Positions 1,581 to 38,617 of a stretch of 41,368 bases of DNA are shown in pieces; position 1 is the stretch's first letter, and every line of letters begins with the position of its first letter. This stretch comes from Salpingoeca rosetta (lineage: Eukaryota; Protista; Choanoflagellata), in the NCBI GenBank assembly GCA_033442325.1, contig JAWQFM010000004.1, positions 67,629 through 108,996 on the forward strand. The letters run 5' to 3'. Both the position numbers and the translations under genes were made by a program. The notes beneath the pieces are model-generated. The model ran no database searches, was not told the origin of the DNA, and saw only the letters and a list, made by a program, of their open reading frames with translations.

Positions 1581-2373
1581 CCTTCCTTCACTCTCCCTCT
1601 CGCCTGCTTGCTGGCTTGCTTATGGCACGCCCTTCTTGTGCTTGCCTGTTGTTTTCATTGTTTGGCGCTGTGTACGGCTGAACACGTTCTTGGTGTGTTT
1701 GGTTGATGTGTGCTGCTGCTGCTGTGTGTGGTTTGGTTCTGGCTTGCAACTGGAGGGTGTTGTTTGATGTGCAGAGGGGTTGGCTGTTGTTTGGTTGGCT
1801 TGGCTTCCTGTTGCGTGTGGGCACTGCTGTGTGTGTGGATGTGTGTGTGTGTTGATGTGTGTTGGACTGGGGCGTTGTTTGTGGGTTGTGTGGCGGACCT
1901 GTTCTTTCCTCAGTAAATGGCTCGATGAAGATGATGAGACCCGCTTGACGGTGGTGATGGTGGAGCGGCGGTGATGTTTGTGGTGTTGGTGTGGCTACAG
2001 ACATTGGTGTGTTGTGCCAACCAGGCAAGACCAAAGAAGCGAGGAGGGCGCGGCTGTTGTTCCTTTCGGCGACAAAGAGCGTCGGGTTGTTTTGCTGGCT
2101 GGCTGGAGGCTCTTCATCCTGTTTGTTTGTTGTGTTCCTGTCGACATGAGATTGTTGACGAACATCTTCCACGGAAGCGCTGCTGTGCGGATAACCTCTG
2201 CAAGGTTTTGCGAATCGTCCAATGGCCGAGTCGCAAAACAACAACACACAAAACAAAGGAAACAAACAAAGCAGCGCGTTGAGTTGTTGTCCTCCATTTT
2301 GTCGTCGTCTTCTTCCAACCACTTACGAACACGTCACAACAAGCCACAAGGAGAAAGACGACGCGCCGTCGCC

Positions 2374-5300
2374 ATGTCCGGCGGAGAGAAGAGAGCAAGG
2401 GAGGAGGTGGAGGCGTTGCTGGCGCAGACGAAGGTGAAGGATGGGGTGAAGAACAAGATCAGGGCCATCGCCAACAACACGTGTCCGGGGGGAATAGAGT
2501 GAGTGCAAAAGCAACCAAAACGACGTGTTGCAACATGCATGCATGTGTTGGACACTAGGCCACAAGGACACTTCTTGTGGTTGTACTCGTGCTTATTCTC
2601 CCCCTCCCTCTCTGCTTGGCTTGTCCTTGTGTTGCAATGGGTGTGGTGTGGCTTGCTGTTGGGTGTTCACGTGTGCGTGTCCTGTCCCCTCGCACCGCCT
2701 GGACACATCAACAGAGAGAGAGTGTGTGTGTGTGTGTTTGTGGCAGGTTGTGACTGACACCCTCATGTTTTTGCTGTCTCGATCCTCAGTCTTCTTGCTC
2801 ATTTCATGACACACACCATTTGAAATTACAGCTTGGGTGGTTATGGCCTCGGCGACATTGGGGCGCGTGCGGTGGCCGAGGCGCTCAAGGACAACACCTG
2901 CCTCGAAACGCTCGAGTGCGTGGTGATGATGAATCTGCATCGTGTGATATGCATGGTTGATTGGGGTGGCGGTGTTGCACGTTGCATCCCTTTCTCCTCC
3001 CCTGCTTGCGCATGTTTGGACGTGTGTTCACCTTCGCTCCCTGCGGTTCTTGTGTGCCTGCACAGCCTGGCAGTCAATTCCATCGGCGATGAGGGCGCTG
3101 TGGCGTTGGCGGAGATGTTGAAGCACAACACGACCCTCAAAATACTCAAGTGAGTGTGTACACGCACACATGCACATGTATGCTGCGTCACTGCCGTTGC
3201 ACCTAACCACGTGCACATGTGTGGTCGATGACTGTGTTGCCACCCACAACAATCATCATCACGCACGCACTCACTCTTCCTCATCCATGTGGCATCATCG
3301 CCCTATGTGGCATCATACCTCTTGACAGCCTGAACAACAATTCCATCGGCGATGAGGGCGCCGTGGCGTTGGCGGAGATGCTGAAGCACAATATGACCAT
3401 GACATGGCTCCGGTGAGTGTGTACACGCACACATGCACATGTATGCTGCGTCACTGCTGCTGCACCTTATCACGTGCACATGTGCACATGTGTGGATTGA
3501 TGACTGTGTTGCCACCCACAGCAATCATCACTCACTCTTCCTCACCCATGTGGCATCATCGCCCTGTGTGGCATCCACCATACCGTCTTGACAGCCTGGA
3601 ACGCAATTCCATCGGCGATGAGGGCGCCGTGGCGTTGGCGGAGATGCTGGAGCACAACACGACCATGACATTGCTCGCGTGAGTGTGTACACGCACACAC
3701 ACACATGTATGCTGCGTCACTGCCGTTGCACCTTTATCACGTGCACATGTGTGGTTGATGACTGTGTTGACACCTACAACAATCATCATCACTCACTCAC
3801 TCACTCTTTCTCATCCATGTGGCAACATCGCCCTGCGTGGCATCATACCGTCTTGGCAGCCTGAGTGAGAACTCCATCGGCCCTGAGGGCGCCGTGGCGT
3901 TGGCGGAGATGCTGAAGCACAACACGACCCTCACAGCACTCGAGTGAGTGGAAGCTCCTCTTTGAAATGTGTGTCTTTAGGCGCTTCTTCTGCAATACCC
4001 ATGTGCAGATGGAGGCACTGCAAGCCACGCATGATGTCTGTGCGACTTGCTTGTTTGACCAACAAATGCTTCCATCCTTCATATGTGCCACAAGTGCTGC
4101 CACATCCTGTGCAATTTGCATTTGCCCCCTTTGCTTCCGCCATTGTGACTTCAATGTCGTAGGACCTGATGTGCGAGCGAGTCCGCGTGCACGTGGTCCA
4201 TCTGCAACCCACTTTCATCCGTGACACTGACACGTGTTGCTTGCCCACCCGTTCCCCTGCTCTTCCAACATGCATTTCTTGCCACTTGCAGCTTGGATAA
4301 CAACTCCATCACCCCGGTTGGCGGTGCGGCGCTGGGTGCCGCACTGGACCAGAACCGCACGCTGGAAGAACTCTGGTTTGTCGATTGCGTTGCGCCTGCC
4401 TCATGAACGCCTGTGTCCTGTTGTGGATTTGTGTGACCAATCGCCACTCTTTTGAGTGCACGCCACACTGTGTGTTCCTCTCTGCTTGCTTGCATTTCTC
4501 CACAACCCTAACCACCAACCCTCCTGACTCACGCACCGCACTTGCTGTTTGTTCCCAACCACACGCTACCACCACGTGTCCTCGTTCAGCATCGAGAAGA
4601 ACTCCACCGCCACCGCCCGCGCCTTTGGTGCCGCGCTGCCCGTCGACCGAGAACTCAGCACAGACTGGTCAGTCAACGCGTGCTTCCACTCTAGTCATTT
4701 GCTCCCTGCCATCTCTCGACCCTTCTCCTCACGCACACATGCTGCGTGGTACTTGCGTGCACATTTCACGTGGGATCACAGGTATGATGACGATGGGGGC
4801 CAGGCCGCCTTTAACGAAGCACGCGAGGAGCAGAAGCGGCAGCATGAGCAACTGTTTGCCGCCTGCAGGGATGGCGACACTCCAGCTGTCACGTCCCTCA
4901 TCGAACAGGACAATGCAGATGTCAACCAACAGGACAAGCAGGTGTGTTCATTATGTGTGTGTGTGTGCTGTGCTTGTATGTGAACGGCGCTCGCTCATGG
5001 TTGCACCGGCCGTGCGTTCGTTTCCAACAGATCCTCACCACACGTGCCATGCCCCTTGCTGCCCCCACCCATCCACAGGGCGACACGCCACTGCACGTTG
5101 CCTGCAGGCACAACCAGCCCGCCGTCGTGGAGCTGCTCATGAAGAAAGATGCAGACACTGCCGTCAAGAACAAGAAGGTGTGCTTCGCGTCGTGTGGCTG
5201 TTTCTGAAGACGTGACACAACTGTTTCTTTGCTTTGTGCTGTGTCCTCCCCCTCTCCCTGCTTCCCTCCTTCCTCAACTCATGCGTTTTACCTTTGCAAC

Positions 5301-5975
5301 ACACGCAGGGAGAGAGGCCCTATGATGTGGCACAGGCCAGCGGTCATACTGCCATCACCAGCATCCAAGGGCTGAAGCCAGGCGGCAAGCCTTTGGAGCA
5401 ACCACAACAGCAACAGCAGCCAAAACAAGAGCCACCTGCGCCCACTCCTGCCGCCGGACCGAAGCAAGAAGAACAAACAGCGCAAGACGTGAGTGATTTG
5501 ACAAGTGCTTGCCAGCAACGCACAAGCAAATGCATCACGTCACCCATGCCATTCCTTCATCACGCTCTCCGTGGTCTCGTATCAAGCATAATCATGTTGT
5601 CTCACACAACCATCACCAGCACCACCATCAGCAGCAGCCCGAGCAGGCGCGCAGGAAGCGTCTCCAGCAGCGCATGCGGGAGGTCATAGCACGCTTCAAC
5701 GCGACCATGGCGGGCAGGGCCAAACTCATCTTCATTGGTCAGGGGCGCGCCGGGAAGACCAGCACGTTCCACTCGCTCATGGGTCACATGTTCAACAAGC
5801 ATGAGCACTCCACCCTTGGCGCCGCCTCAACCGACCTCGCCGTCATTGTCGAATCAATGGACGTTCACGACTGGCAGGTGTGTACCCTTGTCTGGTGCGA
5901 GCATGTGATGTGTGCGACGCATGGGTGTGAAGAGAGGTGGTGGTTGACACGATCATCCCCTCGCACAAGCGTTCA

Positions 5976-6042
<67 letters not shown>

Positions 6043-9000
6043 CCTTTGCAGGAGCTGGATGCGGAAATCTCGGAGCTGATGCGCAGTCTCTGCGGAACGG
6101 CGCTGGCGCAGGAATCGGGCGTGGATTGGGAGATGAAGCAGGCGATGATGAAGGCGAAGGCCGACTTGGAGAGCCGCGTTGCCCAGCACCAACAGCAACA
6201 GCGGCAGCAGGAAGCCGAGAAGGCAGAGAAAGCAACGGCTGCCAAGCAGAAGCAGAAGCAGTTACAGAATGCAAAGGAGACGCGGCCACGTCCATCCTCC
6301 CGCACGTCGCCAGCGACTGTCCCCAAACCCACCAAGGCATCTCATGACTCAGCATCTGCATCCAAGAAGCAGGCCACCCTGAACCCTTCGAGCCAATGTG
6401 ATGCTGCTGCCCGCAATCACAACAACACCGCCACCGCCACGACCGGCATGTCTGCTGAGGACATGGAGAAAGCGATCAAGGAGTTCAACGTGGACGCCGT
6501 CATGGGCGAGGGCAAAGCACGGGTCACGTTCAAGATCTTTGACCTGGGTGGCCAGTCCACCTTCTACATCTTTCACCCTTTCTTCCTCACAGAGTGAGTT
6601 CAAGTTATGTGCGTGCATGCGTGTGTGTCTGTGTGTTTGAGTGTGTGTGTGTGTGTGTGCGTGTGTGTATGTGTCTGTGTGTGCGTGAGTACGGCTGCGT
6701 GCAGTCCCTCCACCACCTCTCCTCCATTCACCTCTCCCTTCATCACCGCACACCCACACCAGGTACGCGGTGTACCTGCTGGTGTTCTCCATGGAGGACC
6801 TGCTTTACCAAGACAAGAGCAAGCGGGCTGAATCGTGGGAGTTTATGGAGCACTGGCTCTCCTCCCTCCACCTCCACGCCAAGGGTGCACCCGTCCTCAT
6901 CGTCGGCACCTTCGCTGATGTGGTCAGCAAGCGTAAGCAGCACGAGAACATATCCCGTGACATCCACAGTCGCCTGCGCCACAACCCGGCCTTCCCTTCC
7001 GTCATCCACAACGACAAGCATGGTCTGTGGTTCTGGCCCGTCGACAACACCAAGTCTATCAACGACACCATGATCCAGGACCTGCGCCAGACCATCTCCT
7101 CCACAGCACTGGCGCAGGAGTACGTGAGTCAGGAGGTGGCTGTGCCATACCTCCACCTCTACGACAAGCTCAACGCCATCGCCCGCGACGAGCAACGGCC
7201 GCTGCTCACGTTTGATGAGGTGGTGGCGATTGCGCGCACATGTGGGCTGCGCACACGTGAGGAGACGAGGGCCTGCCTCCAGTTCCTGCACCTGTACTCC
7301 ATGGTGCTGTACTATGACACCGTGCCAGGCATGGAGGACTATGTGATCCTGAGTCCGCAGTGGGCGGTGGACATGATGACGCGCGTCATCCGAAACTTTG
7401 ATCTGCATCACGACGTGCGTGATGGTGAGGCGAGGGCCGTTGGTGCGCAGCTGTGGGACGACCTGGTTGACCGCGGCATCCTGCACCGTCGCCTGCTGGA
7501 TGTGCTGTGGAAGGACTTGGAAGGTGGCACGATTGAGCCCTTCCTCCAACTCATGATGGAGTACGGGTTGTGTGTCGACTACACGGCACCAATGGTGCGG
7601 CTGTTCGGCCCTCAACAGCAACAACAACACCACCAACAACACCAACAGTACCTCGTCCCAGCCATCCTGCCGATGACGCTGGAGGATGAACAGGCGTCGT
7701 CGTCGGTGACTCTGAGCACGGCAGCAGCACAGCAGGCCAATCCATACGCTGGATATGAGGAGAAGACAGCCTACGTCGCCTTCAGCCTGAGGGAGTTCAA
7801 GAGGGGTGTAAGCGCCAAGATTGCAGACACGCAGCAAGCCTCCTTCCTGCCAGAGGGCCTGTTCCCGATGGTTCTGGCACGCGTGATGGCACACATGCAG
7901 CATGGTGCAACGGAACCGCCCATGTTGAGCCGGACAGACGCCGTAATCTTCATGGACGTGGCTGAGATCGAATTACAGCTCGTGCCGGCTGTTGGCGGCA
8001 TCAAGATCAAGGTCATGACTGCACGTCCTCGCACGCTGCTGCACATGCTGTACGACACCATCACAACAGCTGTCACGCAGCGCTACCCCGAGCTCAAGGC
8101 CACGTTGCTGCTGCCATTTAATGACACGAGACTGCTGTTCTTCGAGGATGTGCACACCCACCACACGAACAAGAAACCGCTTCGCGTTGGCCGCTCACAG
8201 CTGCTGTCACCAGGGGATCTGGTCGCCAAATATGGTCCACTCTTGCCAGTTATGGGTCAGCAGGACAAATACGATGCCTTCATCAGCTACAGGTGGGACA
8301 TGTGTGTGTGTGCGTGTGTATGTGTGTGTGTGTGTGTGCATGAATGTATGGCGCGAACTGGGTGTCTTTCCTTCCCTCTCTCTTCCTTTCTTATTTCGAC
8401 ACTGACCACCACGTCACAGGCAACGCGGCAACCGGGGTTTGGTGATGACATTGTACCCAAAGTTGGAGCAGCACGGACTGGTAACCTTTGTGGACGCCAA
8501 CAACTTGGAGACAGGCGTCAACTTCAAGCACGCGTGCATGACAGCCCTGCACAACAGTACTGTCGCCTGTCCCGTCGTTTCCGTGGGTGCCATCCATCAG
8601 ATGCGCTCGCTCGGCCACACTGACACGTGCGATAACGTCTTGTTGGAGTGGATGGCCATGCTGGAGCTGCAGCAGCTTGCTCGCCAGCATCCAGACAAGG
8701 TCCACCTCCGCCGCATCGTTCCGCTCTTCCTCGGCAGTGGCTGGCACGACAGCAGTCACCATGTTATGAGCAGGGCAGAGGTGAGCGAGTACGACTCGTT
8801 TGACCGCCTGAAGCGGCTGGCAACGAAGTTGCCGGACGTTGTGAGCAAGAACACGACGTCAGCGCTGGATCAGTACTTTTCACAGGTGCTGCGATTGCAG
8901 CCACCTCAGCAACACAAGAGCGTGCGGGAGGCGGTGTTGTCGCTGTTTGACATTGACGCCGTGGTTGCGATGGATGCCGGTGTGGACCGCACGTCGCAGC

Positions 9001-9548
9001 TGCGCGACATTGCGGAGAAGATTCGCCAGGTCGTCGTCTCTGCCAGGAGCGAGGAGCAAGCAGCTCAGGGGCCAGCAGCTGCACGTCGTTCCACGCAGGT
9101 ATAGTTTTGTGGCTGTGTGTTCTTGAGTGGTTGTGTGTGTGTGTGTGTGTGTGTGCGTGTGTGTATGCAGGCGCACTCCTTTCTCTCTTCCGCTTGGCAC
9201 GCGTGCTGTGTCTCACTCAGCCCCTCTAACTTGTCTGCCGTGCAGTCATCTTCCTCGACCTCCACCGCTACAACTCCTGTTACACCACCACCTACCACCC
9301 CATCGCCCTCTTCCACCTCGTCGCCGTTTGAGCCCGAGTTACTTGAATGGCTCAAACGCCACTCGCTGCTGCCGCACGTCGAGTCGGCACTGGTGGAGCA
9401 CGGCATCGACTCCCTGGAGGTGCTGGTCGTGTCCATACAAGAGGGTGACCTGACCAAGGAGGTACTCAGGGAAGCCGGTGTGAAAATTGGGCCGGCAATC
9501 AAGCTGATTCGGGAGGCAAAGAAGTGTGACGTGGACAGTTCTTCATAG
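2374..9548 (+). CDS. Roco-family protein, LRR(RI-like)-ankyrin-ROC GTPase-COR-TIR-SAM; 16 exons
   Basis: Exons: 2374-2498, 2832-2915, 3066-3149, 3329-3412, 3595-3678, 3860-3943, 4292-4375, 4590-4667, 4782-4941, 5079-5177, 5309-5488, ~5620-5877, 6052-6593, 6763-8292, 8420-9098, 9246-9548; GT/AG and phase-compatible. Motifs: LRR (NSIGDEGAVALAEMLKHNTTL), ANK (GDTPLHVACRHNQPAVVELLM), P-loop KLIFIGQGRAGKTS, G3 FKIFDLGGQ, G4 VLIVGTFAD, COR (ACLQFLHLYSMVLYY...VILSPQWAVDMMTRVI), TIR (YDAFISYRQ...TFVDANNLETG...DNVLLEW), SAM (LLEWLKRHSL...LVEHGIDSLEVL...LREAGVKIGPAIKL). Confidence 0.92.
3066..3950 (+). repeat. Tandem array of four 84-nt LRR exons with three near-identical intervening introns (period 263-266 bp)
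   Basis: Exon starts at 3066, 3329, 3595, 3860. The three introns all begin gtgagtgtgtacacgcacaca...catgtatgctgcgtcactgc and end ...tggcatc...atacc(g)tcttg(a/g)cag. Confidence 0.95.
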
Positions 9549-20362: not shown

Positions 20363-21189
20363 NNNNNNNNNNNNNNNNNNNNNNNNNNNNNNNNNNNNNN
20401 NNNNNNNNNNNNNNNNNNNNNNNNNNNNNNNNNNNNNNNNNNNNNNNNNNNNNNNNNNNNNNNNNNNNNNNNNNNNNNNNNNNNNNNNNNNNNNNNNNNN
20501 NNNNNNNNNNNNNNNNNNNNNNNNNNNNNNNNNNNNNNNNNNNNNNNNNNNNNNNNNNNNNNNNNNNNNNNNNNNNNNNNNNNNNNNNNNNNNNNNNNNN
20601 NNNNNNNNNNNNNNNNNNNNNNNNNNNNNNNNNNNNNNNNNNNNNNNNNNNNNNNNNNNNNNNNNNNNNNNNNNNNNNNNNNNNNNNNNNNNNNNNNNNN
20701 NNNNNNNNNNNNNNNNNNNNNNNNNNNNNNNNNNNNNNNNNNNNNNNNNNNNNNNNNNNNNNNNNNNNNNNNNNNNNNNNNNNNNNNNNNNNNNNNNNNN
20801 NNNNNNNNNNNNNNNNNNNNNNNNNNNNNNNNNNNNNNNNNNNNNNNNNNNNNNNNNNNNNNNNNNNNNNNNNNNNNNNNNNNNNNNNNNNNNNNNNNNN
20901 NNNNNNNNNNNNNNNNNNNNNNNNNNNNNNNNNNNNNNNNNNNNNNNNNNNNNNNNNNNNNNNNNNNNNNNNNNNNNNNNNNNNNNNNNNNNNNNNNNNN
21001 NNNNNNNNNNNNNNNNNNNNNNNNNNNNNNNNNNNNNNNNNNNNNNNNNNNNNNNNNNNNNNNNNNNNNNNNNNNNNNNNNNNNNNNNNNNNNNNNNNNN
21101 NNNNNNNNNNNNNNNNNNNNNNNNNNNNNNNNNNNNNNNNNNNNATCATCATCACCATGATCATCACACCACCACCATCATCATCATCA

Positions 21190-30595: not shown

Positions 30596-31062
30596 GCGGG
30601 CGTGCACCTGTGGATCCTGCATCAACTGCCCCAACACACCGTGGGCAGGCGAATCCTGCATGTTCTACGAGAGGAAACGACACGAGGGCGTGAGAATGAG
30701 GAGTGTGAGAATGAGGAGGAGGGAGGAAGAGGAGGAAGAGGATGGGAAAGTACACGAAGTACACGACAATCGCGCATATTCGAGGCAGCAGACACACACA
30801 CACACACACACGACACATAAATCACACACAACACGACCCACGCACAATGACGCTGTGTACATGCCCTGAGCAGCGGGGCTCGTTGACGGCGGCCGCGGGT
30901 GTGCCATCACCTGCACAAACAAACGCACGCACATCTTCATCGGGCTNNNNNNNNNNNNNNNNNNNNNNNNNNNNNNNNNNNNNNNNNNNNNNNNNNNNNN
31001 NNNNNNNNNNNNNNNNNNNNNNNNNNNNNNNNNNNNNNNNNNNNNNACGACGACGACGACAC

Positions 31063-37888: not shown

Positions 37889-38617
37889 TGTTACACCAAA
37901 CACACGCGCACGCACGGGTGCAGGTGATGCTGATGGCGATGTTGTTGCTCGTGCGTGTGTCTGTGTGTGTGTGCTCATGTGTGTGTGTGTGTGTGTCTGT
38001 GTCTGTGTGTATGTGTGTGTGCGTCTGTATGTCTGTGTGTGTGTGCCCGTGTATGTGTGTGTGTCTGTTCATCGGGTACACTGCTTCGCCATGGTTCTCC
38101 TTCACGAGTGTGCTGTTGATTTGGGGCGCAGTTGTAAGTTCATTAAACAACGTTAGGCCAGCCACTGCTGACAGGCAAGCAAGGCACGTGCACACACACA
38201 CACANNNNNNNNNNNNNNNNNNNNNNNNNNNNNNNNNNNNNNNNNNNNNNNNNNNNNNNNNNNNNNNNNNNNNNNNNNNNNNNNNNNNNNNNNNNNNNNN
38301 NNNNATTCCCCGTTGCGAACTGGTGGGGTGAGCGCTCCGGCGTGGAAGACTCGTCATATGGTTGTGTACCATGTGTATCATTTCCAGTGAACCGTCTAAC
38401 TGAGCAGCACAATCCTGCATACCGCTAGTTGCTTTTTGACACAGCTTATACTTACTCTCTCTGCTTGCAAAAATGATAAAAGTCAAATTGTCTCTTTTAC
38501 ATTCTTGGTCTTCGTCCATAAACGCACGTTTGACGGAGATACAGGATGTTGCGGTTCTTCGACAGACGACGGCGGCGACTCACGCGGTCTTTCACACACA
38601 CGCACACACACACACAC

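Follow-up and report, generated by a model that had tools for sequence, protein, structure and literature searches.

How can the introns of a gene be more similar to one another than the exons they separate, and what kind of protein would such an arrangement serve? This question is raised by a gene on the plus strand of a 41,368-nucleotide (nt) stretch of the genome of the choanoflagellate Salpingoeca rosetta (contig JAWQFM010000004.1, positions 67,629 to 108,996; hereafter the window, whose own coordinates are used throughout, with exon boundaries recomputed from the sequence). The gene, a member of the ROCO family, encodes leucine-rich repeats (LRRs) one per exon at 2832-4375, and this array is probably the ligand-binding LRR solenoid of a fast-diversifying, germline-encoded family of intracellular ROCO receptors. 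S. rosetta, which can be cultured and is genetically tractable, belongs with the other choanoflagellates to the sister group of animals.

The array consists of six exons that, as stated in the preliminary description of this DNA, are exactly 84 nt long, in phase 2-2 and start with C. Each is preceded by AG and followed by GT, and is free of stop codons in the frame in which its first base completes a codon begun at the end of the previous exon. Each of these exons corresponds to one 28-residue LRR of the type found in ribonuclease inhibitor (RI) and NLR proteins. The first, denoted type F (..GLGxIGARAVAEALKDNTCL.., 2832-2915), is of the kind that heads every array of the family discussed below; it is followed by four internal cassettes, namely LAVN...KIL (cassette 1, 3066-3149), LNNN...TWL (cassette 2, 3329-3412), LERN...TLL (cassette 3, 3595-3678) and LSEN...TAL (cassette 4, 3860-3943), and by a terminal exon denoted type A (NSITPVGGAALGAALDQNRTL, 4292-4375). 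The introns between the six exons are 150, 179, 182, 181 and 348 nt long, and the middle three (3150-3328, 3413-3594 and 3679-3859) are referred to here as cassette introns. Tandem Repeats Finder reports a period of 266 bp over 3075-3950 (3.3 copies), in agreement with the tandem units of about 265 bp noted earlier; judging from its span, the tandem copies comprise the four internal exons with the three introns between them, and introns 1 and 5 lie outside.

The three cassette introns are 91.7-94.0% identical at aligned bases, so that their earlier characterization as near-identical holds for substitutions and is slightly generous when indels are counted (80-91%); the four exons between and around them (LRR exons 2-5) reach only 79.8-88.1%. 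The 22 variable columns of these exons (5-10, 13, 23, 24, 34, 53, 56, 64, 66, 71, 73, 75, 77-79, 83 and 84) concentrate toward both exon ends and surround the near-constant core that had been pointed out before, NSIGxEGAVALAEMLxHN. When the codons for the x residues of the motif LxxLxLxxNxI are singled out (codons 2, 3, 5, 8, 25, 26 and the split codon 28, all seven of which vary family-wide), 14 of their 20 columns vary in exons 2-5, as against 8 of the 64 others (Fisher p=1.9e-6), which bears out the claim that the differences cluster in the codons flanking the splice junctions. All the junction peptides quoted in support of that claim are reproduced; the last of them, LEELC-IEKN, results from joining the sixth LRR exon to a 77-nt exon at 4590-4666.

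An AlphaFold2 run with residues 27-186 of the paralogous protein PTSG_13066 (single sequence, pLDDT 79.4) yields a model with an N-terminal helix followed by alternating strand-helix repeats. The helices of the repeats correspond to the constant GxEGAVALAEMLKH, and the strands (model residues 68-72, 96-100, 124-129 and 152-157) to cassette positions 26, 27, 28, 1 and 2. Because the strand spans positions 26 to 2, each beta-strand of the model straddles an exon junction, as anticipated in the preliminary description, and the hypervariable residues are predicted to be the alternate, outward-facing residues of the strand together with the loop just after it. The strand residues of LRRs line the concave binding face. 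Each exon would begin with the second half of one strand, continue through the constant helix and end halfway into the following strand.

The array is flanked by two exons that appear to cap it. Exon 1 (2374-2498) carries the ATG and an N-terminal helical cap and is supported by its open reading frame (ORF), by a tblastn alignment to residues 159-190 of PTSG_03500 and by RNA depth; the corresponding region is helical in the model of the paralogue. The exon ends in phase 2 (..ATA GA|GTGAGT, the end being inferred from the GT at 2499) and is therefore joinable to any cassette. On the other side, the 77-nt exon at 4590-4666, supported by its sequence, RNA joints and tblastn, encodes a capping half-repeat (IEKNSTATARAFGAAL...), starts with C and is in phase 2, so that the array is bracketed by compatible junctions.

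A genome-wide search with the 179-nt cassette intron, which had been suggested as a possible marker of an LRR-cassette family, identifies no fewer than 76 copies, which are spread over some 18 contigs. A DNA search with the first LRR exon, on which the count of arrays rests, finds this exon and its intron in 27 arrays, 15 of them at 91% identity or higher. The organization of the arrays was compared in 10-kb stretches of 19 further loci. Every array opens with the conserved first LRR exon, continues with internal cassettes that share the core NSIGxEGAVALAEMLKHNT, and closes with a terminal exon of either type A or type B (ITExGMVNVLKQLQxIDAKAKI). About 130 exons over the 20 loci are 84 nt long and in phase 2-2; the number of internal cassettes ranges from about 1 to 9, the shortest array having the formula FiA, and degenerate cassettes shorter than 84 nt, either truncated or with small deletions, occur in four loci (L013, L015, L016 and L021). 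Outside the subtelomeric regions, PTSG_11903 and PTSG_03500, as well as a transcript of Salpingoeca infusionum, contain ordinary LRRs that lack the constant core.

In locus L029 (contig C36), the terminal type-A exon is present twice (3553-3636 and 4020-4103 of that locus); both copies encode the same peptide, the last cassette unit having been duplicated locally. Downstream of the array on contig C32 (L026:6869-7360) there are three more 84-nt phase-2 LRR exons that start with T or G and have no constant core; the one-repeat-per-exon design is therefore not limited to the cassette family. The public gene model PTSG_13066 reads through cassette introns (e.g., CVCFCCAGGSTAVCHRV) and ends in a stray cassette, so that the reference-proteome annotation of the family is unreliable.

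Family-wide, the seven x positions are hypervariable. In 98 internal cassettes, 13-15 residue types occur at each of positions 2, 3 and 26, 11 at position 28, 7-8 at positions 5 and 8, and 7 at position 25; L1, A13, L18, N21 and L27 are invariant. Diversity (Pi) amounts to 0.60 at the first and second positions of the x-codons, 0.224 in 73 cassette introns, 0.155 at the third positions of the core and 0.074 at its first and second positions. Selection was measured by counting the proportions of nonsynonymous (pN) and synonymous (pS) differences, not with codon models, and 36 independent nearest pairs of cassettes were used to guard against repeated counting of the same sequences. In these pairs, x-codon pN is 0.445, the proportion of differing sites (p) in the introns is 0.079, and the core has a pS of 0.162 and a pN of 0.050; the excess of nonsynonymous change in the x-codons is significant against both the introns (Fisher p=2e-111) and the synonymous sites of the core (5e-26). 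The comparison of codons with introns that had been proposed for this locus thus yields divergence that is not uniform. After Jukes-Cantor correction, x-codon change exceeds that at core synonymous sites by a factor of 3.6-5.9; relative to introns, the factor is 3.8-19 in every bin with intron p<0.3 and 1.6 in the bin of greatest divergence. Positional orthologues of the first LRR exon, compared in 15 loci, give an x-codon pN of 0.367 next to a core pS of 0.055 and an adjacent-intron difference of 0.043; for the first and last LRR exons together, x-codon pN is 0.31-0.37 and the flanking introns differ by 4-5%.

Could the x positions simply be neutral sites of young paralogues, in which everything else is constrained or too young to have changed? 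The loci are 83-91% identical over 10 kb, and recency together with concerted evolution would explain the similarity of the introns. Neutral sites cannot, however, exceed introns and synonymous sites in the amount of change, and both the raw values in the 36 pairs and the corrected ratios make this explanation extremely unlikely. Selection for difference is therefore needed at the x positions. These positions are under selection for difference, in accord with the diversifying selection postulated in the preliminary description, which is apparent as change far above the neutral proxies both within the window and across the 98 cassettes, and the helix is under purifying selection, with a core pN/pS of about 0.3.

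It is a separate matter whether this difference is continually renewed or old. Gene conversion and unequal crossing-over might homogenize introns and helix codons while an ancient pool of x-codons is reshuffled and retained by balancing, without recurrent positive selection. Such a pool would fit the near constancy of x-codon pN (0.44-0.59) across bins of adjacent-intron divergence, and this near independence points to substantial reshuffling. It would also fit the 2-11 nonsynonymous x differences between cassettes with identical introns, the lack of correlation (r=0.05) between the x-codons at the two ends of an exon, and the recurrence of cassette peptides in several loci; e.g., the cassette 4 peptide recurs at the last internal position of loci L024 and L025. 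Conversely, the divergence of the first and last exons beside their little-changed introns resembles change after duplication, and the 13-15 residue types per site exceed what a small fixed pool would be expected to hold. On balance, a purely ancient pool appears to be a genuine possibility, albeit a rather unlikely one, and it would alter the tempo and not the substance of the proposed diversification, selection for diversity being still required.

The exchange of cassettes among loci is visible in the introns. For cassette introns, p is 0.116 when the two come from one locus and 0.118 when they come from different loci, so that the internal cassettes behave as a family-wide pool and not as copies arisen in tandem at each locus; for the positional introns at the array edges, p is only 0.043-0.052. 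The closest paralogue of the window gene, locus L025 on contig C30, is 100% identical over window positions 1900-2799 and 95-97% identical thereafter, and contains two internal cassettes where the window contains four. Window positions 7700-8099 form a 100% tract with contig C23, the locus of which is just 68% similar in the LRR region, and positions 8400-8599 another with contig C29; the tracts shared with C30, C23 and C29 are all flanked by sequence of 84-97% identity and represent either recent gene conversion or assembly artefacts. Along the window gene, the best-matching locus switches every few hundred bp, and some ends of the identity tracts coincide with exon ends. Thus, of the gain, loss and shuffling of cassettes by recombination between introns that the preliminary description envisaged, the turnover itself is borne out by the variation in cassette number, the degenerate cassettes and the mosaic tracts, and its breakpoints would not necessarily lie in introns. 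Three further lines of argument were discarded: concordance of nearest neighbours between flanking introns (0 of 51; the introns are too alike and the neighbours noisy) and Mantel correlations (partly driven by subfamily structure) as proofs of shuffling, and a special functional conservation of the introns, whose mean difference within the main subfamily (12%) is not below the overall divergence of the loci (9-17%).

The pool extends beyond one gene backbone. In the loci with a type B terminal exon (contigs C25, C27, C28 and C34), the 5' flank, first exon and cassettes are about 87% identical to the window overall; in the region of the first exon, C27, C28 and C34 show 91-95% identity and C25, which belongs to a divergent subfamily, about 70%. 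These loci continue into Roc and COR and then a PARP-like domain (L027:6757-7878 on C34; L019:6678-7880 on C25; also L022 and L023). The Roc and COR regions of type B loci barely align to those of the window gene (E of about 1e-3, short motifs), so that the LRR module has been joined to two ROCO genes that diverged long ago. By sequence comparison, then, a putative sister architecture, LRR-Roc-COR-PARP, has its LRR module in common with the TIR-SAM genes.

The location of the arrays offers a plausible engine for this exchange between loci. All 15 close arrays lie 12-71 kb from a contig end, and in all 15 the 5' end faces that end (plus strand at contig starts, minus strand at contig ends). At most 18% of the genome is that near an end of the 68 contigs, so that this distribution is not due to chance (0.18^15 < 1e-11). 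One of these contigs, C36, opens with 58 CCCTAA units (L036:1-400), 36 kb from its array, and the last 3 kb at four contig ends (C34 start, C26 start, C26 end and C13 end; L033, L037, L038 and L043) are about 86% identical to one another in the same end-relative orientation, which indicates shared subtelomeric blocks. The S. rosetta genome paper states, as a generic remark, that most telomeric supercontigs have common repeated subtelomeric regions; its main text does not mention LRRs or leucine-rich repeats. The main exception to end-proximity is locus L013 (C9:1687501-1697500), in which two complete arrays, FiiiA and FiiiiiiA, stand in tandem; these may be two genes or the result of a scaffold misjoin.

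Transcription and splicing were assessed in two stranded RNA-seq runs with 101-nt reads. Plus-strand reads are present in every exon bin and practically absent from introns; e.g., depth is 0 at 2571-2784 and at 3427-3533, within the second cassette intron, as against 54-240 on 3855-3961. Reads spanning GT..AG junctions support 3943|4292, i.e., the joint between cassette 4 and the terminal exon (46 reads), as well as 4666|4781 and 4938|5076, and junction reads of the paralogues L021, L028 and L014 are found in the same data. The reads thus show that members of the family are transcribed and that splicing takes place at the boundaries of the cassettes, and the window gene itself is likely to be expressed.

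All cassettes being symmetric, with a length of 84 nt, phase 2-2 and an initial C, any skipped exon would leave the frame intact, and the LRR exons of brown-alga ROCO genes are reported to be alternatively spliced. One might therefore ask whether regulated exon skipping or somatic recombination produces many isoforms per locus within one cell. Among the 15 of 38 RNA joints listed, there is no clean cassette-skipping junction, and the odd joints resolve to cassette junctions of paralogues, such as LEIL-N|LTKN of contigs C13 and C35 or FFNAGLG of the C26 end. Joints 3140>3860 and 3149>4302 and those that 'go back', considered as candidates for skipping or back-splicing, were rejected, their extra letters matching junctions of L014/L028 and L021. 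Combinatorial use of the cassettes in a single cell is thus improbable, and the more general proposition that mitotic ectopic recombination or combinatorial splicing gives individual cells or lineages different receptor surfaces is similarly doubtful. If it were true, such cell-level variation would amount to anticipatory, diversity-generating recognition in the closest unicellular relatives of animals, resting on ROCO-TIR/PARP and not on NLR or antigen-receptor scaffolds.

Downstream of the capping exon, the gene encodes ankyrin-repeat exons (4782-5380; Pfam Ank, 4.9e-8, above the cut-off; RNA junction 4938|5076 and tblastn), a Roc GTPase domain with the P-loop GQGRAGKTS (5653-6594; PF08477, 3.3e-10, 40.7 bits against a cut-off of 27), COR-A and COR-B domains (6758-8293; Pfam, 76% identity to PTSG_03500; COR-A 3.8e-18, 66.2 bits against a cut-off of 35.3), a TIR domain (DAFISYRW...) interrupted by a (TG)n intron (8263-9095; Pfam TIR_2, 6.3e-5) and a SAM-like C-terminal domain (9330-9548; a weak match to Pfam SAM_2, 1.9e-3), all on the plus strand. 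With Roc and COR-A above the Pfam cut-offs, the gene qualifies as a ROCO, and the comparison with the LRR-Roco genes of Ectocarpus drawn in the preliminary description is apt. The gene is collinear with residues 159-1425 of PTSG_03500 without stops in a tblastn comparison and therefore looks like an intact LRR-ANK-Roc-COR-TIR-SAM ROCO. The best hits of an exhaustive HMMER protein search with the COR ORF are all S. rosetta proteins, namely PTSG_13066, PTSG_03500, PTSG_02681, PTSG_11903 and PTSG_09165. The LRRs score as LRR_6 with 60.8 bits on the paralogue PTSG_13066, a single exon alone reaching 18.9 bits, under the cut-off of 23.4, and Pfam detects no NACHT domain, whether in the ORFs of the gene or in the proteins of the family. 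The best relative of known structure for the TIR domain of the homologous PTSG_03500 is that of SARM1 (E 8e-4, only residues 2-53 aligned). Another ROCO relative, PTSG_02681, carries a C-terminal domain of the PNP_UDP_1 phosphorylase family (E 5e-6), which, from the sequence match, would be a third putative effector type on a similar Roc-COR backbone. Long (GT)n/(CA)n microsatellites are found in the window both upstream of the gene and inside it, in introns or open stretches (223-317, 537-623, 5974-6041, 8301-8338 and 9132-9164); among them are (CA)34 within an open stretch of the Roc region and (TG)19 in the part that codes for TIR.

Several observations weigh against the interpretation of the array as part of a fast-diversifying receptor family. 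The divergence counts were obtained from recombining paralogues, in which recurrent positive selection is inseparable from old diversity protected from homogenization. Of the 12 more divergent arrays, about 4-6, depending on C10 and C24, lie away from contig ends: C9 holds two of them at a depth of about 250 kb, C2 has one at 1.30 Mb, and a further one is located on C30 at 75 kb. Many RNA positions carry letters of paralogues, and 101-nt reads are not assignable to a single locus. The matches to COR-B (7.4e-5, 23 bits against 27), TIR_2 (23.9 bits in the window gene, 23.9-27.7 when family proteins are included, against 28) and SAM_2 (18.7 bits against 20.5) are all under the Pfam cut-offs, and the PARP-like match (E 1e-5 to 4e-5) is just under its own. 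Finally, the genome was assembled from Sanger and 454 reads with gaps, so that the 100% tracts and the cassette order are possibly in part artefacts, and there are N gaps inside arrays L014 and L017.

The last point deserves separate consideration, as part of the cassette order and copy number and of the 100% tracts might be false. According to the genome paper, misjoins of the Sanger/454 assembly were broken manually; the window itself contains three N runs (20363-21144, 30947-31046 and 38205-38304, the first of which causes a dip in GC content at 20-21 kb), and the public model PTSG_13066 is visibly wrong. Set against this, unitigs of a run denoted X13, the kind of which is not recorded and which possibly comes from the assembly's own sample, match the cassette-intron junctions of the window exactly at 3367-3437 (cassette 2, 0 differences), 3635-3723 (cassette 3, 0 differences) and 3784-3863; RNA junctions are specific to several paralogues; and the hypervariability is derived from about 100 distinct cassettes irrespective of their order. 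That part of the pattern originated in misassembly is accordingly very unlikely.

Taken together, these findings are best compatible with the following scheme for a receptor family. All cassettes being 84 nt long and in phase 2-2, unequal crossing-over or gene conversion would add, remove and exchange repeats in frame. Ectopic recombination between end-proximal loci may keep the introns and helix codons alike and spread cassettes among loci, and selection would hold the exposed strand and loop residues (25, 26, 28, 2, 3, 5 and 8) different. The predicted outcome is a germline repertoire of receptors with differing concave surfaces, wired through the Roc-COR GTPase switch to putative NAD-consuming effectors, a SARM1-like TIR or, in the sister loci, a PARP-like domain.

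The driving force of the selection would presumably be variable ligands, such as those of microbes, viruses or prey, the protein would be an immune or cell-death sensor, and its TIR domain may be catalytic. An alternative is that the receptors sense prey bacteria, developmental cues, or mating or kin signals, with TIR and PARP as signalling scaffolds. Bacterial molecules drive development and mating of S. rosetta. The expression of brown-alga ROCO genes is reported to respond to many stresses (PMC11378527). On the other side, the combination of a hypervariable LRR face with TIR or PARP is a hallmark of immune receptors (plant TNLs, SARM1-type TIRs), and exon 1 has no visible signal peptide or membrane segment, so that only intracellular ligands would be met. 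Sensing of something other than pathogens is unlikely, without being far-fetched.

The family can be compared with several known systems. A literature search combining choanoflagellate or Salpingoeca with ROCO returned only unrelated papers and none on choanoflagellate LRR-ROCO genes. The repeats themselves resemble those of animal NLRs (NOD1/NOD2/NLRC3-type) and of ribonuclease inhibitor: all are RI-like repeats of 28-29 residues that belong to LRR_6 and match LxxLxLxxNxIGxxGaxxLaxxL. Many LRR exons of animal NLRs are 84 nt long with one repeat each; a literature search on 84-bp LRR exons in animal NLRs returned nothing usable. The LRRs of NLRC1 and NLRC2 are encoded over multiple exons, and bona fide NLRs or NACHT-LRR genes are reported to be absent from S. 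rosetta (PMC3879445). In contrast to animal NLRs, the S. rosetta family has a Roc-COR GTPase in place of NACHT. The family would accordingly show that, despite the reported absence of NACHT-LRR genes, S. rosetta possesses a large and fast-diversifying repertoire of cytosolic LRR sensors, which would pair the RI-type repeat of animal NLRs with a ROCO GTPase switch and NAD-consuming effector domains and would be relevant to the origin of animal immunity.

Like SARM1, an NADase with the architecture ARM-SAM-SAM-TIR, the window gene combines a TIR domain closest, among solved structures, to that of SARM1 and a SAM-like domain in one polypeptide; unlike in SARM1, TIR precedes SAM and both are C-terminal on a ROCO protein, and the alignment covers only the first 50 residues of the TIR domain. 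The end-located paralogues, their fixed orientation and the mosaics between ends recall the subtelomeric contingency families, such as Plasmodium var, trypanosome VSG and those of yeast. Those families encode switched surface antigens of parasites or adhesins, whereas the S. rosetta proteins are predicted cytosolic receptors of a free-living bacterivore; we know of no switching of expression in the cassette family, and the transcription of several paralogues in one RNA sample argues against strict exclusivity at the population level. With the plant clusters of NLR and LRR-receptor genes, the family shares diversifying selection at exposed beta-strand residues and a repeat number changed by unequal crossing-over, but in plants most LRRs are contained in large exons and combined with an NB-ARC switch, in contrast to the one repeat per exon and Roc-COR found here.

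The closest parallel is the LRR-ROCO family of brown algae (Ectocarpus, Saccharina), in which a 72-nt phase-2 exon encodes each 24-residue LRR, the number of exons varies, four sites of the concave face are positively selected, LRR exons are alternatively spliced or inactivated, and the proteins are proposed to be immune receptors (PMC3341825, PMC11378527). Both families have LRR-Roc-COR with one LRR per equal-length phase-2 exon, a variable number of exons, inactivated exons and selection at the concave face, detected by counting in the present case. They differ in the length of the exon and the class of the repeat (84 nt and a 28-residue RI/NLR-type LRR in S. rosetta), in the end-proximal arrays, the TIR-SAM and PARP-like effectors and the nearly invariant helix of S. 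rosetta, and in splicing, the alternative use of LRR exons reported in brown algae having no counterpart in a clean skip among the S. rosetta joints listed. Brown algae are Stramenopiles, whereas S. rosetta belongs to Holozoa. Given the different exon length and LRR class, the cassettes of the two families are not homologous in design, and the same logic has arisen independently, so that the S. rosetta arrays represent a second, independent case of cassettes with one repeat per exon, a solution originally described in brown algae.

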